From Selaginella moellendorffii (taxonomy: Eukaryota > Plantae > Lycopodiophyta), in NCBI RefSeq assembly GCF_000143415.4, contig NW_003314288.1, positions 930,735 to 994,734 of the forward strand: a stretch of 64,000 nt of DNA, written 5' to 3'. Below are positions 12,399 to 55,459 of the stretch, in pieces. Under the pieces are notes generated by a model. That model made no database searches and was not told the origin of the DNA. It saw only the letters and a program-made list of their open reading frames with translations. A program made the translations under genes and the position numbers. Every line of letters begins with the position of its first letter. Within the stretch, counting starts at the first letter, position 1.

Positions 12399-12399
12399 T

Positions 12400-15100: not shown

Positions 15101-15189
15101 TGCTCCTATCCTTTCTTTTCTGACCCCGTTGATGGCTGGAGGTGTTGTGTCACATGAGACAGTTAGTGGTTTTGTTAGCGGGATGCTTT

Positions 15190-18399: not shown

Positions 18400-18710
18400 T
18401 CGGGATTTCTAGGAAGTTCGTGTTGTTAGTAATAATAATAATAATCATAAAAACCTGACGCATGCATACCCTAGAAATCCCGATTTGTTATTACTTAACT
18501 GTAGTAGTAAAAAGCTCGTGTTTTCTGTTTTTTCTTTTTCTAATTCTTTTCCTTTTTAAACTTTACAATGTCACAGTACATGCATAATTTTCAGACAATC
18601 TTCTAACTGGCTGAACATCTAGGGTTTGTGTGGTGTGTGTGTATCTCAACAATCTCATGCAGTGGAAAACGTTTTTCAGGGATCCCACTTTCTGGTGGGA
18701 CAACAGGTTG
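18400..18710 (+). pseudogene. 5' fragment of a third PDF-PPR gene copy, with its promoter/ATG segment locally inverted
   Basis: 18620-18709 encodes GFVWCVYLNNLMQWKTFFRDPTFWWDNR. About 18458-18619 is the reverse complement of the 49144-49392 upstream region, including the ATG. Confidence 0.8.
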
Positions 18711-18883
18711 GGAGCTTTGATCAAAGACTTATTGGATCTACAAAGAGCTAGCAAGCCAAAGTTCTTGTTGGGATCTTGTTTTTCTTCCTCAGCAGTGGAC
18801 AAGGTATGATACAATGAAAAAGGTAAAGTCAGGTATTTGTTTAATGTCTGCTTGGAGCAAACCTGATAGCCTCATGACAACCC

Positions 18884-23590: not shown

Positions 23591-24208
23591 NNNNNNNNNN
23601 NNNNNNNNNNNNNNNNNNNNNNNNNNNNNNNNNNNNNNNNNNNNNNNNNNNNNNNNNNNNNNNNNNNNNNNNNNNNNNNNNNNNNNNNNNNNNNNNNNNN
23701 NNNNNNNNNNNNNNNNNNNNNNNNNNNNNNNNNNNNNNNNNNNNNNNNNNNNNNNNNNNNNNNNNNNNNNNNNNNNNNNNNNNNNNNNNNNNNNNNNNNN
23801 NNNNNNNNNNNNNNNNNNNNNNNNNNNNNNNNNNNNNNNNNNNNNNNNNNNNNNNNNNNNNNNNNNNNNNNNNNNNNNNNNNNNNNNNNNNNNNNNNNNN
23901 NNNNNNNNNNNNNNNNNNNNNNNNNNNNNNNNNNNNNNNNNNNNNNNNNNNNNNNNNNNNNNNNNNNNNNNNNNNNNNNNNNNNNNNNNNNNNNNNNNNN
24001 NNNNNNNNNNNNNNNNNNNNNNNNNNNNNNNNNNNNNNNNNNNNNNNNNNNNNNNNNNNNNNNNNNNNNNNNNNNNNNNNNNNNNNNNNNNNNNNNNNNN
24101 NNNNNNNNNNNNNNNNNNNNNNNNNNNNNNNNNNNNNNNNNNNNNNNNNNNNNNNNNNNNNNNNNNNNNNNNNNNNNNNNNNNNNNNNNNNNNNNNNNNN
24201 NNNNNNNN
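23591..24208. other. Assembly gap (618 N)
   Basis: Run of N. The equivalent interval in paralog B (about 52460-53368) holds the end of S2, E1-E2-DYW and the 3' flank. Confidence 1.
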
Positions 24209-34400: not shown

Positions 34401-36145
34401 CTTTTCATACAGAAGAAGTTGAACATTAGGCAAACTTGTTGGATGGTCAAACTCATGGAGTTTGGGGAGTTTCCTATTGAGCATCATTCCGGAAAATTGA
34501 ATGTGGTGGTAGATGCTTTATCTCGTGTTTGCCATATGATGGCGTTACAAATATGGTTTTGTTATCATTTGAGTAAGGTGGTTAGCGAGTTTGGGTAGTT
34601 GGTTGAGTGTGCTCAAGCGCAAGATTCTTGTTGCAAGGCCCAGATGGAAGCACTTTTCTCATTGGTGGATGGGATTCTTTACTACAATGGCCATGTGTAT
34701 TTGCCATAGATGGATGTGTTAATTACTTAGGTTTTATTTCACTATCATGATCGTCCAGAGGCTAGTCATTTTGGAGGGAAGAAGACATATAAGTTGATTA
34801 AGCATAATTTTTATTGGAGGAATATGAAGGATGATATCCTCGAGTACTATAAGTCATGTGAGCTCTGTCAACAGGTAAAGGTGCCATGGGAGAAGTCGGG
34901 AGGACTTTTGCAACTTCTACCTATTCCTTAAAGTATCTCTATAGACTTCATCATTTGTTTGCCACGAACACAGAGGCAAAAGGAGGAAATATGGGTTATA
35001 GTTAATCGTTTGACGAAGTATGTGCGGTTGTTGGCTCTTCAGAAGAGTGTCACTGCCTTAGACTTGGCTACAGTATACTTGGAGAAAGTTTTTCCTGATT
35101 TTGGTTTGCCGGAAGACATCATTAGCAATCGAGATTCAAAGTTCACTAGTGGATTTTGGAAGAGTTTTGCAAAGGCTATGCAAGTGACTCTGAAACTCTT
35201 GAGTGGAGATCATTCTTAGACGAATGAGTGTGTGAATCAGGTGGTGGAGGATATGCTATGCTATAGCATTGGTCAAAGGCAGGAATAATAAAATCTATAT
35301 CTTCCATTGGTGCAATTTGCCTATAACAATAGCCAACACAGTGGAACCAAGCTAAATCCTTACTTTGCCATGTTTGGAAAGCATCCTTGAATAGTGGTGG
35401 AGTTGAACATTTAAATAAGGATGTTCAAAAAAAGCTTGATTTAGAGGCGATTGATCTGGCCACAAAACTTGATGAAATTCTGGTAGTGTGCAAATGGAAT
35501 TTGTAAGCAACTTAGGACAGAGTAGAGAAGTTTGCTAATGAGCATTGCTAATTCTGGGAATATAAGGTGGGTGATCTTATCTTTGTGCGAATGATCTTTT
35601 TGTCAAGTGAGTAGTGGAACACCTTAGTGCCTTTGTGGAATGGGAAGAGTGATAAATTTTCTCATCGGTATGTTAGTCTATATGAAGTGCTGGAGTGCAT
35701 TGGTAAGGTGGCTTATCAAGTGCGGCTGCCAGCTAGGGTGAAAATTCATCCGATATTTTATGTTAGCTAATTGAAAGGTATACTATCTCGGAATGATAGG
35801 CCCAATGCCTCTTTGATGTATATGGCTATGGAAGATGGATCAAGAGCTTGAGCAGGGTTCTTTAGAAAGGGTGATTACCGGTACAACTCATCCTTGGGAC
35901 AAGGACTTTGTTGGGGGGAAGAATTGTTAGGCACCAGCTTTGACCACATGGTTAATGTCAGTCAAAGGGAGGCTCAAGGGTTTATGAAGGCATGTCAGGA
36001 TAAAAAATTTAACCTACCCTAGGGCTCACAGTGAGAGGAGCTTTTGAGGTAGCTCGGGGGTGGTTAGGTGGTGAGGAACCTCAAGAAGAGGCATAGTCTA
36101 GTCTAGGAAAATTAGATTGTTGACTTTTTGTTCCATGTCATAACA
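31401..36145 (+). mobile_element. Full-length but decayed Ty3/gypsy element; LTRs 31401-31586 and 35925-36145; TSD CAATT
   Basis: CAATT at 31396-31400 and 36146-36150; TG...CA LTR ends; PBS TAGTATCAGAG at about 31588; PPT GGGGGGAAGAA before 35925. Domain order gag, protease LLDSGS, RT (FTKIGLRSGYHQI, FLNDILVFS), RNaseH, integrase; many stops. Confidence 0.92.
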
Positions 36146-37939: not shown

Positions 37940-39900
37940 GTACACATTGTGCCTGAAGATCAACACAAGACAGCTTTCATCAATCCATAGGGAGCATACA
38001 CCTACTTTTGCATGCCTTTCAATTTCTCCAATGCACCATTCATGTTCAATGGATCATCATTGACACTTTTTGAGAATACCTCACCAAATTTATGCGAGTA
38101 TTTATGGATGACTTTAGTGTCTTCAGTAACAAAGAAGATCATCTCCAATGCTTAAAGAAATGCTTCATCAAATGCCATGAACACAATATCACATTGAACC
38201 CTGACAAGTGTATTTTCTTCATCAAATTAGGAATTCTACTTGAACATGTAGTTTCCAAAGAAGGAATCCTCATCGACAAGGACAAGACCCTCACAATCAC
38301 CAACATACAATATCCATTTGATATTTGAAGCCTTCAATCATTCCTCGGTAAGATGGGATACCATCAAAGATTCATCAAAGACTACGCTAAGATTGCAAAA
38401 CCCATCACTGAATTCCTCAAGAAGAATCAAGCTTACAATTGGACTCAAAATTGTCAAAATGCCTTCATCAACCTCAAGAATTCCCTCACCCAAGCTCCAA
38501 TACTTGCTCAACCAAATTGGAACAAAGACTTCAATATCCAAGTCAACACCTCCAACTATGCCCTCAGAGCGATCCTTTTGCAACAATAAGAAGATCATAA
38601 AGACCAACCAATCTACTATGCAAGTCGAAGACTCAACTCAGCCAAAATGAACTACACTACAACTGAAAAAGAAGCTCTAGCAATGATCTACACACTCCAA
38701 AAGTTTTGATACTACTTACTCGGTAACTTCCTCCATTTTCTCAACAAAACAATCCTCACCGGCAGAATTGCATGATGGTTCTAACTACTTCAAGAATACA
38801 ACTTTGAGATCATCTACAAACCTGGAAGAGAACATGAACACCTAAGCCACATTACAACCGATGAACAACCGAAACACAACATGGATGACTTTCCTGACTC
38901 CAATATCCTTTGAATCCACACATCACTAACCTAGATGGACAACATCTACTACTACCTTACAATAGCAACAATACCAAGTTGATATTCAACATCCGACAAG
39001 CGCAAGAAATTTATCTTGAGGACAAGAATATATTCAGTCGTGGGAAAAAAACTGTACAAACAAGGAAGAGACAACGTATTACAAAGATGTGCAAACCTAG
39101 AAGAAACAAAAGATCTACTTGAAAAAGCCTACTGTGGACAAGTAGGAGGATATTTTGCTGAAGAAATCACAGCTTGAAAAATTTCACAAGTAAGACTTTG
39201 GTGGCTAACACTTTGGCATAACTAAGCCAAGTTCTGTGAAAAATGCGACATCTACCAATGAACCAAGTATGCACCAAAGAAATAAACTCAAGAACTTCAT
39301 CCAAAAACTCCACTCAAACCTTTTCAATGATGGGGACTCGACTTTGTTGGTCCACTTATGACAAGCTCCAAGCAAAACTAGTACATTCTAATTGCAATAG
39401 ACTATATCGCAAAATGGGTTGAAGCTCAATTAATAAAGACTGCTACAACAAAGAACATAACAAGATCATTTACGAAAACATCATCACAAGATATGGCTTA
39501 CCTTGAGAACTTGTCACTGATCAAGGAACACACTTCATCAATGAAACCATCAAGATTTTGACTCAAGAATTCACTATCCAGCACAAGGTTTCAACACTGT
39601 ACTATCCTCAAGGTAACGGTAAAGCAGAGTCTACAAACAAGACACTCAAAAACATCCTCATGAAAATTGTGAAAATAAATCAGAAAGACTGGGACGATCA
39701 CATCTACGATGCTCTGTAGACATATCAAACTACATATAAGGTTTCAACAAATTTGACACCATTCAAGCTCACCTACAGCCTTGAAGCTTTGACACCACTT
39801 GAGTATAACGTTCCATCACTAAAAATGGCAATATAATACAAAATCAACCAAGAAAAATCGATCAGAAAAATGACTAACCATGCTAGAACAACTTATTGCT
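37940..39900 (+). mobile_element. A-rich Ty3/gypsy RT-RNaseH-integrase remnant (same family as 9374-12398)
   Basis: PEDQHKTAF; RVFMDDFSVFS; RNaseH QVNTSNYALRAIL...NYTTTEKEALAM; integrase PFQ*WGLDFVGP and LIAIDYIAKWVEA. Confidence 0.88.
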
Positions 39901-40593
39901 AGATGACATCCTTTGACTATCTCGTTTTGAAGCTTTGGAATGCTCAAGGAGTCTTTTCTAACTCAGCAAAGATGTTGCTTCATATGATGGCCGAGGCTAA
40001 CTATTATCAAACAATTCTATTGATAGAGTTATGCAATCTCATGTGTGAGGCACTACTTTGATGATGTCCTATGACTAAGGAGGAACATGAGATGCATGTG
40101 AGGCAAATGCTGCCACTATTGAGGGAGAATAAGCTGTATTCTAAACTGTCAAAGCGTGAATTCTTCTTGGAGGAGATCACCTATCTCAGACATGTGGTGC
40201 CATGAGATGGTGTGCAGGAAGATCCTCAAAAGACTTAGATAGTCGTTGACAGTGGATTCTGTAAGAGTGTCTGTTGATCGAGGACGTGTGTTCTGGCAGA
40301 GACACATTTATTTTGGCCTGAAATGAAGTCAGGTGTTGATAAGTATGTGCACAGTTGTTAGACCGGCCAGGCAGTCACAATGGATTGTCAGAAGCATGAA
40401 GGTCTCTACCATAGTTAACCTTAGTGGAAGTGGGATAGCATTTTCTATGAGTTTCATAATATGCCCTTCAAGGCAATGATGCTATCTAGGTTGTTGTGGA
40501 TTGTGTGATGATGTTAGCTCACTTCTTCCTTGTGAAGACGAATGCTAAGGCTTTTGACCTTGCTTAGCTGTATTTCTCTATGGGCTTCCTAAG

Positions 40594-43500
40594 TGTTAGG
40601 CGCCAACTTTGACCACGTGGTTAGGGAGGCTTAAGGGTATATTAAGGCATGTTAGGGTAAGGGACTTAACCTACAATGGAGCGGCATAGTGGAGCTTTTG
40701 AGGTAGCTTGGGGGTGGTTGGGTGGTGAGGAACCTCAAGAGGTGGCGTAACATAGTCTAAGGTGACTAGATCTCTGTCTTTTTGTGCCAGATTATAACAT
40801 TGGTATCAGAGGAGTTGGTTGTGATGGATGACCAAGCTGAATGCTGGAATCCTATTGTCGATGGTGGTGCCGACGAAGCTGCGGAGATTTGGACCATTCA
40901 AGATGTGGTTCATGAGCTGTGAGCCCTTATAGCCAATCTTCTTCTCATGGTAAGTTAGATACTAAAAAGTTGCAAACTTTGCAATGTGAGGATGACAAAA
41001 ACAACCATTCCGGTCAGAGGAAGAGACTTTCGATCATTGCTCGTCAGCTCAACTGTGTGTGGAACAAGATGGAGCTCGAGGATATGCGTGAATCAGCTTT
41101 AATGCTGGAGGGCGTGTTTCGTGGCAATCCAGTGTGGATTTTACTGGATAGTGGGAGCGATGACAACTTTGTTTCGGCAAAGTTTGTTATGGAGCATGGC
41201 CTGGTCACACACGGAGTTCTTTCATACACAGTGGAAGGTGCAGCTACCTCTGCTCAGCATTTTGATGCTTGTGTTGAGGGGCTGGAAGTGTTGGTTGGCA
41301 AAACCACACTTGTGGAGACTTTTTATCTCACGGATATCCATTGTGTGGATCTCATTCTTGGGATGCCATGGTTGGTGAAGGTGGATCCAAAGATAAAGTG
41401 GAGAATTAAGCGTATCTCATTGGAGTATGGTGGCGTTAAAGATGTGTGGTTTGGCAAGGGCATTCAACCACCAATTGTTATGCTCTCTGTTACATCTTTG
41501 AAGCAGGCTTGTCATAATGGAAAAGCACTTTCGAGTTACTTGCTGTTTGTTCGTGACTTGGGGGACCAAAGCACGTGTGGGGGAGAAGCAACAGTAAGGG
41601 ATGTACTTGACAAGTTTTCTGATATTTTTCCATCTGAACTTCCTCATGGATTACCTCCGTTATGAGGTGTGGAACATGGGATTATATTGAAGCCGGGGAT
41701 GCGGCCAATTTATCGGCATCCATTTCAGTTAAGTTATGTGGAGGAGCAAGAAGTTCAGTGACAAGTCAAGGAGTTACTTGAGTTTGGATTTATTCAGCCA
41801 AGTAAGTCTTTGTTTGGTGCTTTGGTCTTGCTTGTGAAGAAGGACGGTTTAATGCGAATGTGTATTGACTACCACGCTTTGAACAAAAAGACAATGAAGG
41901 ATAAAATGCCAATGCCACATGTGGATGATATCCTAGACAAGCTTGGTGAAGCACGAGTGTTTACCAAGATTGATTTGAGGAGTGGATATCATCAGATTGC
42001 AATGGATGATGCATCTATCTCCAAGACGGCATTCAACACAAGCTTTGGACATTTTGAGTTTATAGTTATGTCGTTTAGTTTGACGAATGCACCAACCACA
42101 TTTACTTGGTTGATGACAGAGGTATTTGGATGTTATTTTCATGAGTTTATAAAGATTTTCTTGGACGATATTCTTGTTTTTAGCAAGAATATGGAGGAGC
42201 ATAAGGTACATTTGCACAAGGTTCTTTTGTTACTTCGAGACAACAAACTTTATGCAAAAAAGAGCAAATGTGAATTTGCAAAGTTGGAGGTGGAATATCT
42301 AGGCCATATTGTGACATCTAAGGGTGTCAAGATGGATCCAAAGAAGGTGGTTGTGGTGGAAAACTGGCCTACACCGACTACAGTGGCCGAGTTATGCAGT
42401 TTCCTTAGTATGGCTAGTTACTACCGATGTTTCCAACATAAGTTTGCAGAGGTGGCTATTCCTTTGATGCTATTGTTACGCAAGAATGTGCCATTTGAGT
42501 GGAAGAAGCCACAAGAGGAGAGTTTTGTGGCGCTGAAATGATTGTTGAGCAAGACTCCAGTGTTTCGCATTGCTGATCCATTGAAACCTTATGAGGTGAC
42601 ATGTGATGTGAGTGGTTATGCACTAGGAGGAGTTCTCATGCAAGAGGGACAGCCTATTGCATATGAGAGTCAAACTTTGAATTCTGCAAAGCAACAATAT
42701 TCCACATATGAGCAAGAGTTACTCTCTATTGTTCATGCTTTGCGGACGTGGCAGCACTACCTTTATCTTGTAGTGTTTGTAGTGTTGATAGATCACAAAC
42801 CACTTGTGTATATTTTCACATAGAAGGAGTTGAACACTAGGCAAGTTCATTGGATAGTCAAACTCATGGAGTTTGGGGGGTTTCCTATTGAGCATTGTCC
42901 GGGAAAATCAAATGTGGTGGTAGATGCTTTATCTCGTGTTCGTCATATAATGACGTTACAAACATGATTTTGTCATCATTTGAGTAAGGTGGTTAGCGAG
43001 TTTGGGCAGTTGGTTGAGCATGCTCAGGCTTAGGATGTTGAAGTGGCCTCTTTATGAGACTAGATGGAAGCCCCTTTCTCATTGGTGGATGGGATTCTCT
43101 ATTATAATGGCCGTGTATATTTGCCACTGGTGGATGTGTTAATTACTCAAGTTTTATTCAACTATCATGATTGTCTAGAGGCCAGACATTTTGGGGGGAA
43201 AAAGACATATGAGTTGATTAAGTGCAACTTTTATTGGACAAATATGAAGGTTGATATCCTCAAGTATTGTAAATCATGCGAGCTTTGTCAGCGGGTTAAG
43301 GTGCCACAGGAGAAGCCAGGGGGACTTTTGCAACCTTTACCTATTCCTCAGAGCTGTTGGTGTAGTATCTTTATGGACTTGATCATTTGTTTGCCACAAA
43401 CACAGAGGCAAAAGGAGCAAATATGGGTCATAGTGGATCGGTTGACAAAGTATGTGTGGTTGTTAGCTCTTCGAAAGATTGTCACTGCCTCAGACTTGGC

Positions 43501-44591
43501 TGCGGTTTACTTAGAGAAGGTTTTTCCTGATTTTGGTTTGTCGGAAGACATCATTAGTGATCGAGATTCAAAGTTCACCAGTGGATTTTGGAAAAGCTTT
43601 GTAAAGGTTATACAAGTGACTTTGAAACTCTCGAGTGGAGATCATCCTCAGATGGATGGGCAAACCGAGTGTGTGAATCATGTGAGGTATTATATGCTAT
43701 ATTGTAGCATTAGTCAAAGGCAAGGACAGTGGAATTTATATCTTCTATTGGTGCAATTTGCTTACAACAATAGCCAATACAGTGGAACCAAGCTAAGTCT
43801 TTACTTTGCCATATTTGGAAGGCATCTTCAAACAGTGGTGGAGTTGGGATTGCATTTGAATAAGGACATTCAAGATGAGTTTGATTCCGAGACGACTGAT
43901 CTGGCCACAGAACTTGATGAGATTTTGGTGGTGTGCAAACGGAATTTGCAAGTAACTCAAGATAGAGCAGAGAAGTTTGCTAATGAGTATCGCCAATTCC
44001 GGGAATATAAGGTGGGTGATCTCGTCTTTGTGCGGGTGATCTTTCCGTCAAGTGAGCGATGGAACACCTTGGTGCCTTTATGGATAGGGAAGAGTGATAA
44101 ACTTTCCTATCGATATGCTAGTCCATATGAAGTGCTGGAGCGCATTGGTAAAGCGGCTTATCGGGTGCAGCTGCCAGCTGGGGTGAAAATTCATCCAGTA
44201 TTTTATGTCAGCCAATTGAAAGGTGTACTATCTCGGAGTGATGAGCCCAATGCCTCCCTGATGTATACGGCTGTGGAAGATGGACCAGGAGTTTGAGCAA
44301 GGTTCCCTAGAAAGGGTGATCACTGGTACAACTCGTCCTTGGGACAAGGACTTTATTGGGGGGGAAGAATTGTTAGGTGCCAGCTTTGACCACGTGGTCA
44401 ACATCAGTCAAAGGGAGGCTCAAAGGTATATTATGGCATGTTAGGGTAAAGGACTTAACCTACCCTAGGGCTCACAGTGGAGCGGCACTGCAGTGGAACT
44501 TTTGAGGCAACTCAAGGTGAGGAACCTCAAGAGGTGGCATAGCATAGTCTAGAGCAACTAGATCTATGTCTTTTTGCACCAGATCATAACA
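40594..44591 (+). mobile_element. Ty3/gypsy element (same family as 31401-36145) with gag deletion; LTRs 40594-40799 and 44371-44591; TSD CTAAG/TTAAG
   Basis: PBS TGGTATCAGAG at 40801; PPT GGGGGGGAAGAA before 44371; protease LLDSGS, RT FLDDILVFS, integrase H-H-C-C ORF 43064-44296. The empty site (single CTAAG) is at 14302-14306 in the paralogous segment. Confidence 0.95.
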
Positions 44592-45494
44592 TTAAGGATG
44601 TTGTAAGTGACCGGGATCCCACGTTCACTTTGGTGTTTTGGCAGACAATGTTCCAGAAGCTTGAGACAAAGCTAAGCATCAGCATCCACAATCAGATGAA
44701 CAAACAAAATGAGTTAATTAGGTGCTGGAAGACATGCTAAGATTATTGGTCATCTGAAGAGGCAAGGTATTTGGGAGAAGTACCTGCCTTTGTTAGAGTT
44801 TGCCCATAACTATGCCTTCCATTTGGCTATTGAGATGGCTTTGTTTATAGCAATGTATGGCTTTCAACCTTGGTCCCCGGCTGGTATGAACTTGGCTTCT
44901 CTTAAGGTGCACCAGGCAAAGGAGTTGGCTGATGAGCATTGTCAGCACAAGCAGTTTCAGGTTGGAGACAAGGTTTTCCTTCGGTTGTCTGAAGCTCAAT
45001 GAGCTCTTCAAGGTGGAGGTAGTTCTAAGTTCTCGCCATAGTACTGTGGGCCTTGGATTATTCTCAAACGAGTTGGAGACCTTGCCTATCAACTAGACTT
45101 GCCTAGTGGTGTGAAGATTCATCCTGTCTTCTATGTAGGAAGTTGAAGGCATGTTTGCATTCTGGTAATATCTTGGACCAGTCTGCGATCAAGATTTCAG
45201 AGATAGATGTTTGAAGGTTGGCCCTACTTGTGTGTTATAGCAACGGCTAGCGCGCACACATCATAAGACTTGGAGAGAGTTACTTGTTCAATGGAATGGT
45301 TATTCTCCATATGATGCTACATGAGAAGCTGAGGATGATGTTGTTTCCTAATTTTGAGTATGACTTGGATGACATTCCAAAGGAAGAGGAGAAGTAGTCA
45401 CTTGCTCCTATCCTTTTTTTCTTTTCTGACCCCGTTGAGGGCTGGAGGTGTTGTGTCACATGAGACAGTTAGTGGTTTTGTTAGCGGGATGCTT

Positions 45495-46900
45495 TGCTAG
45501 CTTCTCTCTCCTCAGCTACTGTTCATCATAGTTGGAGCAGATGGAAAAATGTCAACGTATTTCGTGATGAACCAGCTGATTCTGGACCTAGGTCTCTGAT
45601 CAAAGAGCCAAATACCAACTGCAAATTTGCATGTGAAGAGGTGTTCAAGCATCTCCACGGGGTTTTCATTGCATAGAATACACAGAGTTTTGTGAACTGT
45701 GAGCCAATCACCAACAGGGATGCTGTCCTGCACAAGAAGCCAGCTTACCTTAGCTTCCACCAGTGTCTTCCACATGTTCACAATGTACTTCCGATTCTTC
45801 AACTTCTGCATAAGCCTGGTGTCAATTTTATCCATCAAAAGCTCTCTGCCATGCTTAGACCTGTACATAAAAAAAGACGCACTGAACTCATTACCTTCCC
45901 AGGATAACTGAGCCGGATCTTATATAAGATCAGATTTAGGTACTCCCCAAACTAGTGTATTGCAGAGCATTCTCCCAGTTGAACCTTAGGATCCAGTTCA
46001 GTGTATTTCCCTCTCTGATGTATCGTCCTGATCCTTTTACCGAAGGCCATCCTGGGAACTGGGACCTCCTTGGGAACTATACATGGAAACAGTGCACCAC
46101 TGTTATGGGGATAAAAAAAAATACCTTGAGGTGATGGGGTTGTTTCCATAACAAAGATGATTTGAGTCTCAGCACCATCAAGCATTATCGAATCACGAAC
46201 CTCGATAACTTCAGTTTGTAAAGCAAGATGAAGGCGATCACAAGCGATGCTGCCTTAAGCTTTGATGTGGAGTTTTTATCCTGGGTTGTGAAGGGTTGTC
46301 ATGAGGCCATCCGATGAGCAGGGTTTGCTCCAAGCGGACGTTAAACAAATACCTGACTTTACCTTTTTCATTGTATCATACCTTGTCCACTGCTGAGGAA
46401 GAAAAACAAGATCCCAACAAGAACTTTGCTGTAAGTGATGGCTTGCTAGCTCTTTGTAGATCCAATAAGTCTTTGATCGAAGCTCCCACATTTCTATGCC
46501 ACCTAGGCCAAAGACCTCTACCCAAGCCTGGAGCTGAACAGTCACCTATATACTGTTGATTACTGTACTTATGTGCTACGTTGAAGAACAAGCGATCAGC
46601 TAATGCCTCTGTCAGATGGTCTGGTTCTTTCTGACTTAACCTGGGTAGGAGTGTGACTTCCATATCTTCAACATCTCTTTTGCTATTCCATCCTGGACCT
46701 TCTTTGTGTTGAGAGGAGCAGTGCCAATCGATTCCTTGTTTCTAGTTACCACCCTGTCTAGGCAAGATCTTCAGTTTCGTGGGTATAAACCTGACACAAT
46801 CACTTTGAAGAGAAGAGCTTTGGATTGAATTCCTGGTGTGGCACATTCCGAATAACTGAATTCCACTCTACTTTTGCCCGCACCCACTGGAGTTTCTAAA
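45495..46900 (-). mobile_element. LINE ORF2 remnant (zf-RVT-like), copy B
   Basis: Same sequence as 15190-16165 with about 400 bp extra. Confidence 0.7.
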
Positions 46901-47694
46901 GTTTCTACATATGTCGTTGGAGATCAAGTGTTGGTGAGTTATCGGGTGTTGCGGATCCAAGGTTTTTGCTGCGTAGGTCCTTATCACATCGTCCAACAAG
47001 TTGGTCCACAAATCTTTGTGGGGCACTCAATGCACAACGTCAAGAGAAGATCCATGTGAAGCAGTTAGCTCGATATTGTGTGTGAACGGATTGATGTAAG
47101 GATTCTACCATATATTCTATGGTAGATATAGATAAACTCAACAAGATTGTATTTATGGAGCCCACAAGAGTAGGAGTGAGGTGTTATCATATTCTGAATC
47201 CCACAAGAGTGAGAGGTGTTAATCACATTTTTTATATGCTCCGAGGTTTAGGGATATGAGGGGGAAGGGAAAAAAAGAATTAATTAGAGTGAAAATGCGA
47301 GTTATTGTGAAATTGGAGTATAAATGTGACGAGCTAAGAGTAAAAACGTGATGTAGCAGCTTAAAAGAGGGAAGTAGGAATGCTCGGATGGAGTTCCACC
47401 AGGTAGAAAAGACTAGTCATACCTCAAGCCTCGGATTGCTCCCAACCCCCTGCCTCCACCCGGTTGCCTACTTTAACCAAGCAGTCTTGGCGCACAGGGA
47501 TGACATCAGCCCTAACCTCTTGCTCCACTGCTCCTACTTCTGAGCTTCTCCCCCCCTTAACAAAAAAGGTCTGTTCTCTTGGAGTTCAAGAGGCATCCTC
47601 TTCACCATCTCCTCTGTTTTTGCTAGCTAGTTAGCTCTTACAAGAAGGAGCAAAAGCCAAGTTCAGCTCCATGCTCAGCTCTATTATCTCCTCT

Positions 47695-48375
47695 TTAAGA
47701 CACCTCACCTCTTTGAAGCCATTCAGGAGAGCTAGCACGCTTCACGTCTAGACGTCTCCCCCTTTTCTTTTTTTTTGCGATTGTCTCTTCAAACTCATCA
47801 TACTTATTTAACTCACCAAACCTTACCAAGCCGAGTGCAGGTTTTGAAACCCCATGAGTCACCTTGGCCTTTTTCCATCTTCCAGTTGAGCTCTCCAACA
47901 ATCTTGACGTGCGGATGCGTGCAAACTGCTCCTTGAGCCAGGACCATTTCTCCAGGAGATAACTTATGCTACAACACTCTCCGCTCGACGATCTCAATGT
48001 GGAAAGATCCACAAAGCTGTCCCACTCATCATAGTTGTAGAAGAAATCATCCTCATACTGCATCTGCAACCTTGCTCGAGCCCAAGCCTCCGCCATCGCA
48101 AGCTTCTCCCTCATCTTGATCAGCTCACACTTGAGGCGGCAAAACAAGTCCAGGTCCTGAGGAACAACAATGGAATACACCTTTCCTGGGTACCTGTCTC
48201 GAAACATGTGAAAGTACAGTGGACGATGTGGTGTTTCAGATTGCAGCGGAATGATAACTTAATGAAAGCAACAAAACCATCAAGCTCGCTCTTTGGGGAT
48301 CACTTATCATATCCTCCTTTGAAGCAATGAGCAGCAGGCCTTGATCGCATCCAGAAGTACTAGAGATAGTCTGCA
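47695..48375 (-). pseudogene. Unknown protein-coding remnant, divergently oriented upstream of the PPR-DYW gene
   Basis: 170-aa ORF 47695-48207 plus an upstream in-frame extension with stops; family not recognised. Confidence 0.35.
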
Positions 48376-49386
48376 AAAGCAAGTTTGACACCAGTTATTT
48401 TGGCAACACAGAAGAAAAAGAAGAAAAATAAACTCAAGTTTCAAAATTTATGGAGATCCATACAATCCAAATCAAGATCAATCTTCCACGAACTTAATGC
48501 CGCTTTCAGCACCTCCAAGCTCTGCCGAAAAACGTAGCCACGGTATGCCACAATTGTTCGCTTGAAAACCTGAAGATGTCAATCGAAGCATGCAAGCAAA
48601 AACATGAAGTAAAGAAGCGCAGGTGGACAACAAAGGAGATGAACTGAGCGGGGCCAAGAACACATATAAGGACTGAATGTAAGCATGTGAGGCCTTGCGC
48701 GGTTTTTCCTCCATGCATGGCTTCATGTGCGAAGAGTTTGGTGTGGTAAGGTATGTTGCGGAGCAGCCAGAAGCCCAGGGTGAATATAAGTACGTGAGGC
48801 CTTGTGAGGTTTTACCACTGCCCGAGGACTTGTGTGCATGGGCCCCGGGCGAGACTCATTTGTGAAAGTGTTCTGCATGAAACTGGTGCCCTGAGGCTTC
48901 TGGCCGTGTCGCCTCATGAAGAGCATTTTTTATTTAATTTGTGTAGAGTGTGGTTTATTTTTGCATATTGAGTGTATCAGTATCTTTTAGTTAGCAGATT
49001 ATATTGAAGAACTGAAGACTACCTACAGTTAAGTGCATGCAGCAACAGATTATATAAAAAATGAATGCAGAGAATAACAAATCGGGATTTCTAGGAAGTT
49101 CGTGCGTGTTGTTAGTAATAATAATAATAATCATAGAAACCTGATGTTCAGCCAGTTAGAAGATTGTCTGAAAATTATGCATGTACTGATTCTTCAGCTC
49201 TTGAGCAACTGATTGCTGCTGGCTCACTTTCTATATATATCAAAGAGACAATAAACATCTAAGCTGCTGCAGTTAAGCTGTGACATTGTAAAGTTTAAAA
49301 AGGAAAAGAATTAGAAAAAGAAAAAACAGAAACCACGAGCTTTTTACTGCTACAGTTAAGTACTAACAAATCGGGATTGCTAGGGT

Positions 49387-52300
49387 ATGCGTGCGGCGCT
49401 AAGGTTTGTGTGGTGTGTGTCATTTCTCAACAATCTCATGGAGTGGAAAACGTTTTTCAGGGATCCCACTTTCTGGTGGGACAACAGGTTCAAGAAGAAA
49501 AACAAGTTCTTCTCAGAGTCCTACCCGGATTTCAAACATGTTTCTACCGGAGAGAGCCTGTGGATCGCCAACAGGAAAACACCAACCTGGGTCTCTGCAA
49601 AACTCGAGTCGCTCGCTGACCCAGCTGTAGGTAAGGCCACCACGGCCCGCTACAAATCTCCACATACCCCAGCTGAGGAACCGGTGAGTTTAGGGAGGCT
49701 GATACACCGCGTGAGAGACTCAGCTGAGAGCAGATCCCTTTCTTTGGGAAAACAAGCCCATGAAGCTGTGCTCAAGAGTGATGAGCACAAAAGCAACATC
49801 TACTTGTTGACGGGATTGATCGATATGTACTGCAAGTGTGGCGAGCTTGAGGAGGCTCGCAAGATTTTCGACTCCATGGGAACCCGGAGTGTTGTGTCCT
49901 ACAACGCGATCATCCAGGGCTGCGGCTCGAACGGGCAAGCTGAACTTGCTCTGGAGTACTACTCTGCCCTGAGAGCTTGTACCACCATTCAACCCAACGA
50001 TCGGACACATGTCGCGGTGATCAGCGCCTGCTCCAGACTTGCTACCGAATCCAGCGAGAAGAGGGAGAGAGCTCTACGCATCGGGATGGAGATCCATTCA
50101 ATGCTGAGCAAGGAGAAGAAACAGCTAGATCTGTTCGTGGCGACTTGCCTGGTAGACATGTACTGCAAGTGTGGCGAGCTTGAGGAGGCTCGCAAGATTT
50201 TCCACTCCATGGGAACTCGGAGTGTTGTGTCCTACAACGCGATCATCCACGGCTGCGGCTCGAACGGGCAAGCTGAACTTGCTCTGGAGTACTACTCTGC
50301 CCTGAGAGCTGATAACACCATTCAACCCGACGATTGGACACATGTCGCGGTGATCAGCGCCTGCTCCACACTTGCTACCGAATCCAGTGAGAAGAGGGAG
50401 AGAGCTCTACGCATCGGGATGGAAGTCCATTCAGTACTGAGCAAGGAGAAGAAACATCTAGGTCTGTTCGTGGCGAATTGCCTGGTAGACATGTACTGCA
50501 AGTGTGGCGAGCTTGAGGAGGCTCGCAAGATTTTCCACTCCATGGGAACTCGGAGTGTTGTGTCCTACAACGCGATCATCCAGGGATGTGGCTCGAACGG
50601 GCAAGCTGAACTTGCTCTGGAGTACTACTCTGCCCTGAGAGCTTGTACCACCATTCAACCCAACGATCGGACTCATGTCGCGGTGATCAGCACCTGCTCC
50701 ACACTTGCTACCGAATCCAGGGAGAAGAGGGAGAGAGCTCTACGCATCGGGATGGAGATCCATTCAATGCTGAGCAAGGAGAAGAAACAGCTAGATCTGT
50801 TCGTGGCGAATTGCCTGGTAGACATGTACTGCAAGTGTGGCGAGCTTGAGGAGGCTCGCAAGATTTTCCACTCCATGGGAACTCGGAGTGTTGTGTCCTA
50901 CACCGCAATCATCCAGGGCTGCAACACGAACGGGCGAGCTGAACTTGCTCTGGAGTACTACTCTGCCCTGAGAGCTTGTACCACCATTCAACCCAACGAT
51001 CGGACTCATGTCGCGGTGATCAGCGCCTGCTCCACACTTGCTACCGAATCCAGCGAGAAGAGGGAGAGAGCTCTACGCATCGGGATGGAAGTCCATTCAG
51101 TACTGAGCAAGGAGAAGAAACATCTAGGTCTGTACATGGCGAATTGCCTGGTAGACATGTACTGCAAGTGTGGCGAGCTTGAGGAGGCTCGCAAGATTTT
51201 CCACTCCATGGGAACTCGGAGTGTTGTGTCCTACACCGCAATCATCCAGGGCTGCAACACGAACGGGCGAGCTGAACTTGCTCTGGAGTACTACTCTGCC
51301 CTGAGAGTTGATAACACCATTGAACCCGACGATCGGACTCATGTCGCAGTGATCAGCACCTGCTCCAGACTTGCTACCGAATCCAGCGAGAAGAGGGAGA
51401 GAGCTCTACGCCTCGGGATGGAGATCCATTCAATGCTGAGCAAGGAGAAGAAACAGGTAGATCTGTTCGTGGCGACTTGCCTGGTAGACATGTACTGCAA
51501 GTGTGGCGAGCTTGAGGAGGCTCGCAAGATTTTCCACTCCATGGGAACTCGGAGTGTTGTGTCCTACACCGCGATCATCCAGGGCTGCAACACGAACGGC
51601 CGAGCTGAACTTGCTCTGGAGTACTACTCTGCCCTGAGAGCTGATAACACGATTCAACCCGACGATCAGACTCATGTCGTGGTGATCAGCGCCTGCTCCA
51701 CACTTGCTACCGAATCCAGCGAGAAGAGGGAGAGAGCTCTACGCATCGGGATGGAGATCCATTCAATGCTGAGCAAGGAGAAGAAACAGCTAGATCTGTT
51801 CGTGGCGAATTGCCTGGTAGACATGTACTGCAAGTGTGGGGAGCTTGAGGAGGCTCGCAAGATTTTCAACTCCATGGGAACTCGGAGTGTTGTGTCCTAC
51901 ACTGCGATCATCCAGGGCTGCAACACGAACGGGCGAGCTGAACTTGCTCTGGAGTACTACTCTGCCCTGAGAGCTGATAACACCATTCAAGCTGATGCTT
52001 GCACCTACAGCTGCGTCCTTGTTGCTTGCGGGAGTGTGATGGCGATCAAGCTCGGGAGGGAGATTCACCAGCTGGCGAAGTATAAAGGGCTGCTGAAAAA
52101 CAATCCAGTTCTGGGCTCCAGCCTGGTGAGCTTCTACGGCAAATGCGGCGATGTTGATTCTGCTCAGGAAGCGTTTGACGAGTGCCGAGCTCGGGACGAC
52201 ACGGGTCTCTGGAACTCTCTCATACAGGCTTACACTCTCCAGGGCCGATCGATTGAGGCCTTGGAGCGTTTCTATTCCATGACTCAGGAGGAGGGCTGTA

Positions 52301-53124
52301 AAGCTGACGATGTGAGTTTTGTTTCGGTGTTGAACGCTTGCAGCCATGGTGGTCTGGTCAGGAAAGGAAGGCAGCTTCTGGATGAAATGCCCAAGCAGTA
52401 TGGAGTCAAGCCACGTCTGGAGCATTATGTGTGCCTGATCGATATGCTCGGGCGAGCTAACCTCCTCGACGAAGCTGTGAGAGTTCTCAGAGCCATGCCT
52501 TTTGAACCGGATGCAGTGGTTTGGACGTCCCTGCTCGGAGCCTGCCGGAAGTGGAAGAATTACACGATTGGCAAACTCGCGTTTGAGCGTCTTGTGGAGA
52601 TGGATCCCAAGAGCGGCACGCCCTATGCATTGATGGCCAATATATTTGGAAACGTGGGGATGCTCAGTGAAAGGGCCGCTGTTGTGGAGAGAATGAGAGG
52701 TGAAGGCAGCTTCAGGGAGCCCGGGAGAAGCTGGTGGACGGATGTTAGCTCAGGAAAAGTGCATTCTTTTTCTGTCGGGGATAGGAGTCACTCACAGAGC
52801 GACGAGATTGCGGCCAAGCTCAAGCAATTGTTGCTGAGAATGAAAGAGGAGGGGTACGCGAGCGATGTGATCAACGTTCTAAAAGACATACCCGAGGAAG
52901 ATCACCTGTGCGGCCACAGTGAGAAGCTTGCGCTGGGGTGTGCTCTGGTGAACTCGCACCAGAAGGAGACCATCAGAATCGTGAAAAATCTCCGAGTTTG
53001 TGACGATTGCCATGCGGCCACTGCTCTCATCTCTAAGCTGGAAAAAAGGCTAATCATCTGCAAAGATGCCAGTCGGGTTCATGTGTTCCAGGATGGCAGA
53101 TGTTCCTGTGACAACTACTTTTGA
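49387..53124 (+). CDS. PLS-class PPR RNA-editing factor with N-terminal OSB-type PDF motif and C-terminal E1-E2-DYW (WW subtype) cytidine deaminase
   Basis: Intronless 1245-aa ORF. PDF motif at aa 20-73; about 26 P/L/S motifs ending P2-L2-S2; E1 AVVWTSLLGACR; PGRSWWTD box at 52720; intact HSEKLA and CDDCH zinc ligands; ends GRCSCDNYF. Confidence 0.95.
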   Translation: MRAALRFVWCVSFLNNLMEWKTFFRDPTFWWDNRFKKKNKFFSESYPDFKHVSTGESLWIANRKTPTWVSAKLESLADPAVGKATTARYKSPHTPAEEPVSLGRLIHRVRDSAESRSLSLGKQAHEAVLKSDEHKSNIYLLTGLIDMYCKCGELEEARKIFDSMGTRSVVSYNAIIQGCGSNGQAELALEYYSALRACTTIQPNDRTHVAVISACSRLATESSEKRERALRIGMEIHSMLSKEKKQLDLFVATCLVDMYCKCGELEEARKIFHSMGTRSVVSYNAIIHGCGSNGQAELALEYYSALRADNTIQPDDWTHVAVISACSTLATESSEKRERALRIGMEVHSVLSKEKKHLGLFVANCLVDMYCKCGELEEARKIFHSMGTRSVVSYNAIIQGCGSNGQAELALEYYSALRACTTIQPNDRTHVAVISTCSTLATESREKRERALRIGMEIHSMLSKEKKQLDLFVANCLVDMYCKCGELEEARKIFHSMGTRSVVSYTAIIQGCNTNGRAELALEYYSALRACTTIQPNDRTHVAVISACSTLATESSEKRERALRIGMEVHSVLSKEKKHLGLYMANCLVDMYCKCGELEEARKIFHSMGTRSVVSYTAIIQGCNTNGRAELALEYYSALRVDNTIEPDDRTHVAVISTCSRLATESSEKRERALRLGMEIHSMLSKEKKQVDLFVATCLVDMYCKCGELEEARKIFHSMGTRSVVSYTAIIQGCNTNGRAELALEYYSALRADNTIQPDDQTHVVVISACSTLATESSEKRERALRIGMEIHSMLSKEKKQLDLFVANCLVDMYCKCGELEEARKIFNSMGTRSVVSYTAIIQGCNTNGRAELALEYYSALRADNTIQADACTYSCVLVACGSVMAIKLGREIHQLAKYKGLLKNNPVLGSSLVSFYGKCGDVDSAQEAFDECRARDDTGLWNSLIQAYTLQGRSIEALERFYSMTQEEGCKADDVSFVSVLNACSHGGLVRKGRQLLDEMPKQYGVKPRLEHYVCLIDMLGRANLLDEAVRVLRAMPFEPDAVVWTSLLGACRKWKNYTIGKLAFERLVEMDPKSGTPYALMANIFGNVGMLSERAAVVERMRGEGSFREPGRSWWTDVSSGKVHSFSVGDRSHSQSDEIAAKLKQLLLRMKEEGYASDVINVLKDIPEEDHLCGHSEKLALGCALVNSHQKETIRIVKNLRVCDDCHAATALISKLEKRLIICKDASRVHVFQDGRCSCDNYF
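49798..51990 (+). repeat. 333-bp tandem repeat (S-P-L triplet, 111 aa), 6 full units plus a final S-P
   Basis: ATGTACTGCAAGTGTGG at 49825, 50158, 50491, 50824, 51157, 51490 and 51823, an exact 333-bp period. Confidence 0.97.
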
Positions 53125-54742
53125 AAACATGTCAGTGCTCTTTCTTGCAGTTATCCCTGGTTTTAAACCCTCCGTGAGTCAAGCAGAAACATGGGCTGCT
53201 GAGTGAGCATGCCTCATCAAAGTACTGCCGCCAACCTGAACTTCACGGAGAAAAAACTTAACATTTAGAAGTTAAAACTATGCAAAAGAACGATGACACG
53301 TTGTCTTAAATTTAAATTTCTTTTTGCTAGCAGAATCGGGGAATGCTGACTAAATCTGCCAACAGGTGCCCCAAAACGGAGCGCCCAGATTCAGATAATA
53401 AGCCTTAGTATGAAGACTTGCAAGTACCCAAACTCTTTGCTGATAGCAAGTACTGCCTCATGTTCCGGGAGCAAGGTGATGGCGGCTTGCGGCATGACCA
53501 ACTTTGGGTTTGTGCTCCTAGAGCACGTTGAAGACGTGTGGAAGCTGGTGACGAGCGACGTACTCACCAGTTCCTCGGCAACGTCTTCCTTCCAGATTTT
53601 TTGAGCTTGTCGTGAGTGGTGACCTGCTTGCTCTCTCCTGTGACGACTTCTTCCAGCCTCTGGTGCCCAACCTCAAGGCTCTCTTGTGGATGGAGCTAGC
53701 CCTACACAGTGTGTGTGTGTGTATCAACCAGCAGATGCACAAATCGTTGAGAATTAGCAACAACTGTGTATCATAGGCTTAGTAGTGTACATGTACATGT
53801 GTTTCAGCTAAATATAATGGGCCAAATACACCGAAGAAGTGTGTATAAGAAGAGTAGAAACAAATTAAGAAATGTAAATTAAGAAGTGCAAAAGAAATGA
53901 AAATAAAAATTGTCCAGCCTCATCAGTTTGCTGAAATTAAGTTGGATTCAATTCTTCCAGCTCCAAATATTGTGTGATTGAGTTGTAAGTTAATTAATAG
54001 TAGAAAATAAGAAAAAAAACAAAGTGTTTGATAATATCTTCTTTGCTTTTAGTTTTTTATTTTCTAGTGGGGGAGTGCTGGTAAAAATATCTTTGCCGTT
54101 CATTGGTGGTTAATTAAATGAGCATGTTTAGAGATGTTTATAAGATGGACCAAGAGTTACCCGAAAATTAAAGTTCAAAATTTACGTTTTCCCTATTTGC
54201 ACAATAACTTAAGCTAAAGTAATGTACTTACCCTTATTTTTTATGTGAAAATTATTAGTATCTACGAAAAAAAAGGGAGGATTCTTAAGTAATTTTCAAA
54301 AACCCCGAACAAATCTAAAGTGTTGGGGTCAATAATTCCGGAAATATTCGAGAAGATCCTTAGGTTATCGCGGCACGTAATCCGATTTTAGGGTTGGAAA
54401 AGGAAACAGAGCTCTGGGAAATGGGGCCTGCTCGTGACCAACAGGAGGAGGAAGAGGTGCCCATGGTGGCCATGGGGAGGAGGGCGCGGGGTGGCCGGGG
54501 TTGGCCGCGGATCTCTGAATCTGGCCCCGGGAGGATTAGGCCATGGTTCTGAGGCGGCTCGAGGAGGGGGTGCCCCGGGAGGAGGAGGCCATGGTTCTAC
54601 TCTAGGAGGAGGACGCCGCGGTTCTTCTCCGGGAGGAGGCCATGGATCATCGCCAGGAGGAGGCCAAGCCTCGGTGGGAGGAGCCGAAGCCACAGCGGGA
54701 GGAGTCCAAGCCGCGCCCGGAGGAGCCCAAGCCACGTCCGGA

Positions 54743-55459
54743 GGAGTCGATCCAATTCGCAACATCAACAGGTACTTGATGTCTGGAGAGAGTGCTGGAA
54801 CCGACTGGCTCCCTCCGGAGTGCGATATCTCCATCAGGCCCGGTTGGTTTTGGCACAGGAACGAGGCTCCAAAGTCCCTGGAGCAGCTGCTCGACGTTTT
54901 CTACAAATCATCCGCCAGGAACTGCTTGCTCCTGCTCAACGTCCCTCCAAACTCGTCGGGACTGATCGACGAATCCCACTTCCAGACGCTGGAGCGGTTT
55001 AGCTCCGCCATAGATTCCATCTTCAGCGTCAACTTAGCAGCGAATCCTTTGTCCGTGACAGCAAGCAGCGTTCGCAGCTCTTCGTTCGGGCCGAAGTAAA
55101 TCCTTGACGAGTGTATGGAAACTTTCTGGGCTCCAATGCAAGGGGAGTCGACCGGCTGGATCGAGCTTGATCTTGGCAAGGTCTCAAAGTTCAACGCACT
55201 GGAGATCCGAGAGCCAGTAAACATGGGACAAAGGGTCATGGAATATCACGTCGAGGCATGGGACAGCGAGCTGGGCTGGTACCTGGTGAGCAACGGTAGC
55301 ACCATTGGTTACAGGAAAGTGGATCGACTGGAAGAGGATCAAGAATGCGCTGCTCGGCTCGTTCGACTGCTGATTGACGCGTCGCGGGGAGATCCATTGA
55401 TCTGCTTTTTTCGTTTGTACTTCGATATGTACAACCTCAGGCACTTGTCTTCTATTTAG
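54743..55459 (+). pseudogene. Alpha-L-fucosidase (GH29, plant FUC1-like) C-terminal half with F5/8-type domain; one in-frame stop
   Basis: DWLPPECDISIRPGWFWH...KSLEQLLDVFYKS..RNCLLLLNVPPNSSGLI; TAA at 55097-55099; the same frame continues FWAP...EIREPVNMGQRV...GSTIGYRKV. The N-terminal catalytic half is absent. Confidence 0.88.

Follow-up and report, generated by a model that had tools for sequence, protein, structure and literature searches.

The organelles of Selaginella moellendorffii contain thousands of editing sites. With 3,861 PPR genes the species ranked highest of 364 surveyed (PMC13386178). In the window analysed here (the whole stretch of 64,000 nucleotides), one PPR gene, gene B, contains a series of near-identical tandem units, and the question is how such an array evolves and whether exchange between its units alters the RNA that the protein is predicted to read. 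An earlier note, made from the sequence alone, had proposed a TALE-like array in which recombination reprograms specificity. We consider it probable that gene B carries a young intragenic S-P-L array of a PLS editing-type family, which recombines and thereby incidentally rewrites the predicted code.

Gene B belongs to the PLS-E1-E2-DYW class of PPR genes and encloses the whole array within a single ORF. Its parts outside the array are as follows.

49387-53124, + strand: gene B, intact 1245-aa ORF (ORF list, Pfam, motif parse)
49444-49605, + strand: N-terminal OSB-type 'PDF' motif region, ..DPTFWWDNR..YPDFKH.. (translation)
51997-52851, + strand: non-repeated L-S-P2-L2-S2-E1-E2 part (Pfam, motif parse)
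52852-53121, + strand: DYW cytidine-deaminase domain (Pfam DYW_deaminase, 2.9e-27)

The motif order was found to be a PDF-type head, L, (S-P-L)x6, S-P, L-S-P2-L2-S2, E1, E2 and DYW. The repeating P-L-S order was detected with Pfam (PPR_2 2e-99, PPR 3.8e-91, PPR_1 3.2e-60) and by a manual parse, in which S31-P36-L44 recurred. E_motif (aa 1058-1116, 5.2e-9) and Eplus_motif (E+; aa 1125-1152, 9.4e-6) both scored above the Pfam cut-off, and the zinc-binding HxE and CxxCH of the deaminase were legible in the translation as HSE (HSEKLA) and CDDCH. The D-Y-W tripeptide was absent from the C-terminus: B and its paralogs C and D (see below) all finish with the variant ending ..CSCDNYF. A 9-nt stretch (EKE) after 52899 is present in C and D and missing from B. 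Single bases that distinguish B are 52010 G, 52081 T and 52254 T. The N-terminus has the PDF-type motif, not an obvious transit peptide. Judged by this architecture, gene B would be an organellar RNA-editing-type gene, with a putative editing activity. PLS-class PPR-DYW C-to-U editing factors are built as (P1-L1-S1)n-P2-L2-S2-E1-E2-DYW (PMC8110955). Gene B shares with them the motif order, E1/E2, a PG-box-like start of the deaminase, HxE and CxxCH, and the residues of its motifs (N or T at position 5; N, D or S at the last position) agree with the published code. It differs in the length of its L and P motifs (44 and 36 residues), in its NYF end and PDF-type N-terminus and in its triplets, which are 91-98% identical in nucleotides, whereas 254 other PLS proteins had a median best internal identity of about 50% over 100 aa.

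The array was recovered as the earlier note had described it. Tandem Repeats Finder (TRF) gave a 333-bp period at 49825-51990, with 6.5 indel-free copies and 95% matches, and the motif parse placed the register from 49798. Each unit encodes 111 residues, S(31)+P(36)+L(44). The units are listed with the residues at position 5 and the last position (5/last) of each motif.

49798-50130, + strand: unit B1, S TS, P NN, L VD; first 24 nt of the S motif divergent
50131-50463, + strand: unit B2, S TS, P ND (left block type 1 with right block type 2), L VG
50464-50796, + strand: unit B3, S NS, P NN, L VD; absent from paralogs C and D
50797-51129, + strand: unit B4, S NS, P TN (left block type 2 with right block type 1), L VG; positional counterparts A2, C3 and D3
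51130-51462, + strand: unit B5, S NS, P TD, L VD; five substitutions unique among all known units
51463-51795, + strand: unit B6, S TS, P TD, L VD
51796-51996, + strand: unit B7, S and P only, S NS, P TD; TRF repeat end at 51990

Cutting by S(31)+P(36)+L(44) reproduced exactly the P-motif pairs claimed for A and B, those of gene B being NN ND NN TN TD TD TD in order. The N/T toggle at S position 5 and the L motifs ending in D or G were seen as well, and the predicted target string proved to be a correct derivation from the published PPR code. Within the P motif we found two blocks of linked nucleotide differences, a left block (5 differences, unit nt 107-140) and a right block (4 differences, nt 181-199), and alignment of the units confirmed that all four left-right combinations occur. 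The linkage of code residues to their surroundings is looser than had been stated. Position-5 N travels with GS..Q and T with NT..R in A and B, but GS..R occurs in D2 and NT..Q in C7; at the last position N accompanies the CT block and D the DN block, yet the DN block of A3 ends in N (..DNTIQAN).

The units are mosaics. For the A and B units a minimum of five recombination events (Rmin 5) was obtained, with a PHI-like permutation p of 0.0001-0.0005, and 13 internal units from four genes gave Rmin 5 and p 0.0002. These recombination tests were significant, and a tree cannot explain the units (Rmin 5, p<=0.0005). All four gametes were seen for three block pairs. Segment distances between units showed tracts of zero difference alternating with tracts of 7-10 differences; B4 and B5, for example, share 136 nt without a single difference, and the following 130 nt contain 10. 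One exchange interval separates the left half-block of the P motif from the right. Recurrent mutation was considered as a source of the four combinations and rejected, since each block consists of 4-5 linked differences. Synonymous divergence among units (pS 0.03-0.15, pooled 0.07) was comparable in size to the divergence between genes.

A second copy, paralog A, lies upstream in the window, within the partner of a duplicated segment.

21881-23590, + strand: paralog A, 5' portion, ending at the assembly gap (motif parse)
23591-24208, no strand: assembly gap of 618 N inside paralog A (N run)
39384-54742, + strand: segment B, tandem segmental duplication with its partner at 11879-25742 (self-BLAST, repeat families D9-D13)

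The array of paralog A (22262-23128; 2.5 copies at 22289-23122 in TRF) has three units with S/P pairs TS NN, NS TN and NS TN. The P pairs NN, TN, TN agree with the earlier count of three units, but the ORF enters the gap and its 3' half is outside the window sequence. A and B are spaced 27.5 kb apart, as clustered close paralogues with chimeric structure. The non-coding identity of the duplicated segments is 89-95%, and they differ by insertions or deletions of 3-4 kb, one of which is a dispersed repeat. With non-coding identity this low and indels this large, the possibility that A and B are mis-joined haplotypes was rejected.

Two further loci of the family were found in GCA_000143415.2, L001 (gene C) and L002 (gene D), both reached through the only near-identical representative, a partial protein model, that an exhaustive search with units B2+B3 returned. 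Gene C has an open ORF of 1209 aa and 7 units (P pairs NN ND TN TD TD TD TD); gene D has an open ORF of 1097 aa and 6 units (NN ND TN TD TD TD), one TD unit fewer than C. The four known genes thus hold 3, 6, 7 and 7 units, 23 in total, and both number and order of units vary between genes only 3-4% apart at synonymous sites. Because they do, the predicted 5/last strings differ between close genes. The gene is 98.2% alike in C and D, but its upstream flank is not shared; the flanks of C, D and B show no simple match.

The C-terminal part and the positionally matching units are under purifying selection. Omega was 0.21 (B-C) and 0.32 (B-D) in the C-terminal E/DYW part, with the non-repeated L-S-P2-L2-S2-E1-E2 stretch, at dS 0.033, and 0.29-0.41 in positionally matching units (0.29-0.30 for B against C and D), so that both parts fall at about 0.2-0.4. 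Against this background the code positions are unusually variable. S5, P5 and P-last ranked 4-11 of 111 columns by entropy (permutation p 0.001-0.01). In a McDonald-Kreitman-like comparison, variation shared among units comprised 16 nonsynonymous and 4 synonymous codons, whereas matching units had 21 of each (Fisher p 0.02). In both tests the units are not independent. An RVD-like pattern of variation is not supported: 36 of the 111 columns vary, and each P code residue changes along with 2-3 neighbouring non-code residues in a linked block, not as an isolated hypervariable site. Since the code residues vary within such blocks, their high entropy may be inherited from two ancestral unit types and not selected.

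These observations suggest a simple mechanism. Being so alike, the units would be prone to misaligned pairing. Unequal crossing-over would then add or remove whole units, and crossing-over or short-tract gene conversion within units would produce chimeric motifs. As the two exchange-separated blocks of the P motif each hold one code residue (position 5 or the last position), such chimeras would yield NN, ND, TN and TD. The genes of the A-D family look functional, to judge from open ORFs and an omega of about 0.2-0.4, and shuffling is therefore predicted most likely to alter the upstream nucleotides readable by the N-terminal two-thirds of the protein, while the invariant C-terminal motifs would keep the core of the site, predicted as C, G/A, n, G, U at -10 to -6. 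The earlier idea that recombination reprograms these genes fits our data insofar as the predicted code string is altered between close genes; its upkeep as a generator of evolvability is not supported.

Could the array of B instead be an artefact, its unit number and order arising from the assembly of near-identical repeats of two haplotypes? Gaps exist (the 618 N in paralog A) and the assembly contains both haplotypes (PMC3680112). The public reads (four runs) are represented by Logan contigs, whose length of 60-1250 nt is insufficient for phasing 333-bp units, so the unit order in B comes from the original assembly; 20 public runs contain about 55% of the sequence words. The private B5 allele at 51412 had no coverage in the independent DNA run, and the sole contig there (run X1) has the common base. 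Against a collapsed or inflated assembly, the B units are all distinct, with at least 9 nt differences between any two, and five of the seven carry substitutions private among the A and B units (B2, B3, B5 and B6 among all 23 known units). B3 has three (50586, 50589 and 50721) that occur in no other of the 23, and its bins were covered, with no discordant bases listed, by a probably independent run of 2024, guessed to be DNA. The architecture and open reading frames recur at three other loci, each assembled separately. We consider an artefact very unlikely. We also regard it as rather unlikely that the array is a neutral by-product. On this view B, and perhaps A, would be a recently duplicated, redundant or decaying copy with little or no expression, the additional units would contribute nothing to the reading of RNA, and the mosaics would simply be traces of unequal crossing-over. 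Presumed RNA runs (whether X3 and X4 are RNA or DNA is a guess) contained non-B alleles in unique sequence and at diagnostic sites and left the unique 5' part of B uncovered. A-B omega outside the array was 0.7-1.6, on very few changes, so either A or B may be relaxed, and B5 differs from its counterpart C4 by 11 nonsynonymous and 3 synonymous changes. However, the 3.7-kb ORF of B is open, its omega against C and D is low in both the C-terminal part and the matching units, and one contig among the guessed-RNA runs bears a B-private allele (C at 51600 in B6; 73 nt, run X4).

Two further explanations assign selection a larger part. Under concerted evolution, ancient triplets would be homogenised by conversion while selection for a fixed target preserves the code and diversity is erased. 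The recurrence of homogeneous triplet arrays among distantly related members of the PDF-headed subfamily and the conspicuousness of the code residues against a uniform background would fit, but unit number and order differ among genes 3-4% apart, the pS between units resembles the divergence between genes, and no orthologue above 42% identity was found among 1.8 billion representative proteins, which makes this account improbable. We also doubt the strong form of the original proposal, a TALE-like array kept homogeneous for rapid retargeting, with recombination as a selected specificity generator. In its favour, few columns vary more than those of the code, unit types differ from one another by an excess of amino-acid changes, close paralogs have different code strings, and relatives in other plants retain triplet arrays. 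On the other side, the linked blocks include non-code residues, older arrays of other plants show a weak enrichment of variation at the code residues (p 0.01-0.37), and selection for evolvability is indistinguishable from a by-product on present data. A recombining young array that rewrites its predicted code incidentally is the reading we prefer.

TALE, RipTAL and Bat arrays, found in bacterial DNA-binding effectors, consist of near-identical modules in which one or two residues set the base preference, and they evolve by repeat gain, loss and recombination. Gene B has near-identical tandem modules (95% matches, 6.5 copies) in common with them, without homology. They bind DNA, whereas B has a predicted RNA target and a module of three motifs (111 aa), and the variation of B is not confined to specificity residues. 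Another parallel is offered by the clusters of P-class restorer-of-fertility-like (RFL) genes, in which PPR motifs are duplicated, deleted and transposed through unequal crossing-over or gene conversion, with altered RNA recognition proposed as a consequence (Melonek et al. 2016, PMC5075784). Clustered paralogues, chimeric genes and motif-level recombination are shared with the A-D family. Gene B, as a PLS gene with a DYW domain, falls outside the P-class RFL clade; RFLs lack a deaminase, and the RNAs they bind are mitochondrial CMS transcripts. Exchange among RFLs is mainly between genes, with motifs far less alike, whereas the exchange unit of B would be a three-motif triplet within one editing-type gene. 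Motif-level recombination in PPR genes has thus been published for the P class (PMC5075784). In the full-text literature that could be searched, no description of near-identical PLS triplet arrays in editing factors was found.

Gain, loss and recombination of whole triplets offer a concrete and testable route to new predicted editing specificities. The designer editor dsn3PLS-DYW likewise consists of repeated, consensus-like P-L-S triplets, differing mainly at positions 5/last and followed by P2-L2-S2-E1-E2-DYW (Royan et al. 2021, PMC8110955). It is synthetic, with three triplets of canonical motif length, whereas the natural arrays have six to seven and a predicted RNA target. The natural array suggests that a PLS array can be long and nearly uniform and still be tolerated, and a comparison of its modules shows the residues at which they vary.

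How far the array type extends was assessed by searching for relatives. An exact-protein look-up returned no record for gene B, and a word-index search with the whole protein gave a best match of 35% identity, so B is unannotated and without a close orthologue of comparable length. Given the lack of orthologues above 42% identity, the unit type is lineage-specific and probably recent. More distant PDF-headed PPR-DYW relatives in Sphagnum, Diphasiastrum and Adiantum have arrays of 4-8 similar triplets with 60-88% identity. It is conceivable, though we regard it as speculative, that in mosses, lycophytes and ferns the PDF-headed PPR-DYW subfamily has homogeneous, recombining PLS arrays in which unit gain, unit loss and half-motif exchange regularly yield new specificities. 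If so, the Selaginella family would be this process caught in the act and a natural modular PLS scaffold for designed editors. The same PDF-type head as in gene B was found in the Sphagnum and Diphasiastrum relatives.

Gene B is a single unbroken ORF of 1245 amino acids, and the array under study lies within it. In its product Pfam detects numerous PPR motifs, E and E+ motifs and a DYW_deaminase domain (2.9e-27); the translation contains the zinc signatures HSE and CDDCH, and its C-terminus reads CSCDNYF. Judged by this architecture, (P-L-S)n-P2-L2-S2-E1-E2-DYW as defined in PMC8110955, gene B is a predicted PLS-class PPR-DYW RNA-editing factor. Tandem Repeats Finder detected the same period in gene B and in paralog A, the ORF of which runs into an assembly gap.

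49387-53124, + strand: gene B
49825-51990, + strand: gene B repeat, 333-bp period, 6.5 copies, 95% matches, 0 indels
22289-23122, + strand: paralog A repeat, same 333-bp period, 2.5 copies
23591-24208: 618-N assembly gap met by the paralog A ORF

Aligned by eye to canonical motif starts, the 111-residue units each break down into an S motif of 31 residues, a P motif of 36 and an L motif of 44. The resulting register begins at 49798, where the earlier note had put it, and the residues at P positions 5 and last agree with its table: NN, ND, NN, TN, TD, TD, TD in gene B (units B1-B7) and NN, TN, TN in the three units of paralog A (A1-A3). In both genes S position 5 toggles between N and T with S always last, and the L motif ends in D or G. 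The proposed pairing of final N with the CT block and of final D with the DN block held in general, the exception being A3, which has the DN block yet ends in N. The array observation is therefore confirmed with small corrections only. The position 5/last code is valid for P and S motifs, and L motifs mostly take no part in recognition (PMC7190159). In the published code TN denotes A, TD G, ND U, NN C or U and NS C.

An exhaustive search of 1.8 billion representative proteins with units B2+B3 returned just one near-identical protein (96% identity), every other match being at most 42% identical. This protein and its cluster mate are the partial S. moellendorffii models EFJ11447.1 and EFJ23586.1. 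Their loci, both in assembly GCA_000143415.2 and distinct from the window, were 95-96.6% identical to gene B.

L001, GL377646.1:1-12042: gene C, open ORF of 1209 aa, 7 units, P pairs NN ND TN TD TD TD TD
L002, GL377592.1:302633-319514: gene D, open ORF of 1097 aa, 6 units, P pairs NN ND TN TD TD TD

Four members of the family are known, with 3, 6, 7 and 7 units; the units are clearly mosaic, and the family is under purifying selection. Genes A-D are 0.8-3.8% apart at synonymous sites, yet unit number and order differ. By best match, B1=C1=D1=A1, B2=C2=D2, B4=C3=D3 (approximately A2), B5~C4=D4 and B7=C7=D6=A3; B3 lacks a counterpart in both C and D, and the TD units of C outnumber those of D by one. 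Genes A and B are true tandem paralogues, the non-coding DNA of segments 11879-25742 and 39384-54742 being 89-95% identical with kilobase-scale (3-4 kb) insertion/deletion differences. The v1.0 assembly included both haplotypes (PMC3680112); genes C and D, which may be alleles or separate loci, are 98.2% identical, and their upstream flank is not common to both. C and D also lack about 92 nt encoding the PDF-type N-terminal motif of A and B (L001 1977-1995 and near 7700 in L002, compared with 49420-49530 of the window); their long ORFs begin downstream of the missing stretch, and the N-terminus differs from that of A/B.

We found 48 variable nucleotide sites among the 10 units of A and B, and grouped them as two-state blocks.

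P-left block: unit nt 107, 127, 128, 130, 140, all amino-acid changing, P position 5 included
P-right block: unit nt 181, 182, 185, 199, last P position included
L-right block: unit nt 294-332, last L position included

All four left-right combinations, which the earlier note had reported for the P motif, were present for each pair of these blocks. Segment-wise distances between units swing between zero and many: B4 and B5 show 0 differences over 136 nt and then 10 over the following 130 nt, and B2 matches B4 throughout L-right and has 7 differences from it in each of the two segments before. The mosaicism of the units was borne out by a Hudson-Kaplan Rmin of 5 (eight units) and by a PHI-like pairwise-incompatibility permutation (p 0.0001-0.0005); the 13 internal units of A-D gave Rmin 5 and p 0.0002. 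A tree-like unit history is rejected. Recurrent mutation was ruled out as the source of the block combinations, because each block comprises 4-5 linked differences.

The number or order of the B units is unlikely to be an artefact of assembly. Every pair of B units has at least 9 nt differences; five B units have substitutions absent from all the other units of A and B (for four of the five, absent from the rest of the 23 known units too), and the same architecture occurs at three other loci. This evidence against an artefact is indirect. About 55% of sampled words were found in 20 public runs from 7 studies. The four runs compared (X1-X4) all consist of short Logan contigs, too short for phasing units. 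X2, which dates from 2024 and was guessed to be DNA, covered 30 of 30 bins, the B3 region included, and listed no discordant base at the B3 private sites; its depth was near nil at 51165-51315. The private B6 allele at 51600 was present in one 73-nt contig of X4. X1 and X4 contigs carried A, C or D alleles, not those of B, at 52010, 52081, 52254 and 52980 and a 9-nt insertion after 52899. In runs guessed to be RNA, the unique 5' part of gene B had no coverage; if these runs are RNA, this gene family is probably transcribed.

Unit B5 (51130-51462) has five substitutions absent from all other known units, four of them amino-acid changing; none touches the code letters, and they could be either genuine divergence or errors in the original assembly's sequence. 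At the one that was checked, 51412, which lies outside X2 coverage, the only contig, from X1, has the common base. At three diagnostic sites a public 1250-nt contig (X1 record 8, at 51961-53201) reads the non-B alleles that A, C and D share; it also has a 9-nt insertion in frame and a T at 52863, a base absent from both C and D. This contig may be the missing 3' half of paralog A behind the 618-N gap, in which case A would be intact there.

Selection estimates for the family
C-terminal ~375 codons (L-S-P2-L2-S2-E1-E2-DYW), B vs C: omega 0.21, dS 0.033
C-terminal ~375 codons (L-S-P2-L2-S2-E1-E2-DYW), B vs D: omega 0.32, dS 0.033
Positionally matching units, pooled, B-C: omega 0.29
Positionally matching units, B-D: omega 0.30
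Positionally matching units, C-D: omega 0.36
Positionally matching units, A-B: omega 0.41
Non-matching units, all A and B unit pairs pooled: pN/pS 0.66, several pairs >1

Outside the array, A and B differ by very few changes with omega 0.7-1.6, so one of the two copies may be relaxed. Codons whose variation is common to at least two internal units gave 16 nonsynonymous to 4 synonymous, against 21:21 for matching units of B and C (Fisher p 0.02), and S5, P5 and P-last ranked 4-11 in entropy among 111 columns (permutation p 0.001-0.01); as related units are not independent, both sets of figures are nominal. RVD-like hypervariability at code residues was not supported: the P code residues belong to linked blocks that also include non-code residues (P positions 12, 13, 16, 30, 31), and the two kinds change together. 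Variability at code positions could equally be a legacy of two ancestral unit types. The likeness to TALEs proposed earlier stands for modular near-identical repeats and falls for variation confined to specificity residues; it is an analogy only.

The mosaic array is real, with stronger support than a reading of the sequence alone could give. It most likely reflects ordinary repeat dynamics, unequal crossing-over and conversion among units. The module under exchange happens to bear the RNA code, so that predicted specificity shifts as a by-product. Published work on P-class restorer-of-fertility-like clusters describes PPR motifs being duplicated, deleted and transposed through unequal crossing-over and gene conversion, with recognition proposed to be altered as a result (PMC5075784). 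The nearest man-made counterpart is the designer dsn3PLS-DYW, built of consensus triplets (PMC8110955). We found no description of near-identical PLS triplet arrays in editing factors in the full-text library searched.

The best internal identity within 100 aa was 96% in B; its median was 50% in 254 PLS proteins taken from homology searches, a set skewed towards repeat-rich proteins. Looser arrays of 4-8 similar triplets were seen in other PLS proteins.

P0008, Sphagnum magellanicum: triplet identity 70-86%
P0124, P0193, P0049, Diphasiastrum complanatum: triplet identity 60-88%
P0038, Adiantum capillus-veneris: triplet identity 60-76%
P0004, JGI protein: triplet identity 60-80%

Most of these have a PDF-type N-terminal head as in B (49444-49605), and in the biased sample (n=254) internal identity was higher for proteins with this head than for those lacking it (Mann-Whitney p 0.0008). 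Units of the Diphasiastrum and Sphagnum proteins resemble those of a paralogue roughly as much as the other units of their own protein, so these arrays are older. No S. moellendorffii PPR protein among the matches listed exceeded ~60% internal identity. P0123 (GAB4825152.1, Ancistrocladus abbreviatus; annotated PPR, 1095 aa) is made up of a 97-aa unit repeated ~11 times at nearly 100% identity. It is either the same phenomenon at its extreme in an angiosperm, or else an artefact of assembly or annotation.

An antisense ORF of 209-211 aa crosses the array end and is open in 4/4 gene copies (- strand; 51790-52425, 22922-23557, L001 4259-4888, L002 9639-10274); it is probably a side effect of sense-strand codon composition. 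Downstream of both PPR paralogues (25434-25736 and 54578-54748) is a G/C-rich 21/27/42-bp tandem repeat, Gly/Pro-rich in frames of either strand; in L002 a gene fragment with an F5/8 type C domain comes after it. A dispersed repeat of 3.5 kb is present in two copies, 83% identical (32555-36037 and 40929-44482), and the second explains the 4-kb insertion of segment B relative to segment A. Two blocks of 6/12-bp satellite at 3854-4243 and 7825-8509 consist of (CTCGGT)n and the reverse-complementary (GTCCGAGATGGA)n. A 19-bp tandem repeat flanks each block, one consensus looking reverse-complementary to the other, and GC skew flips sign between 2001-4000 and 4001-6000; together these look like the inverted ends of a ~4.7-kb element.
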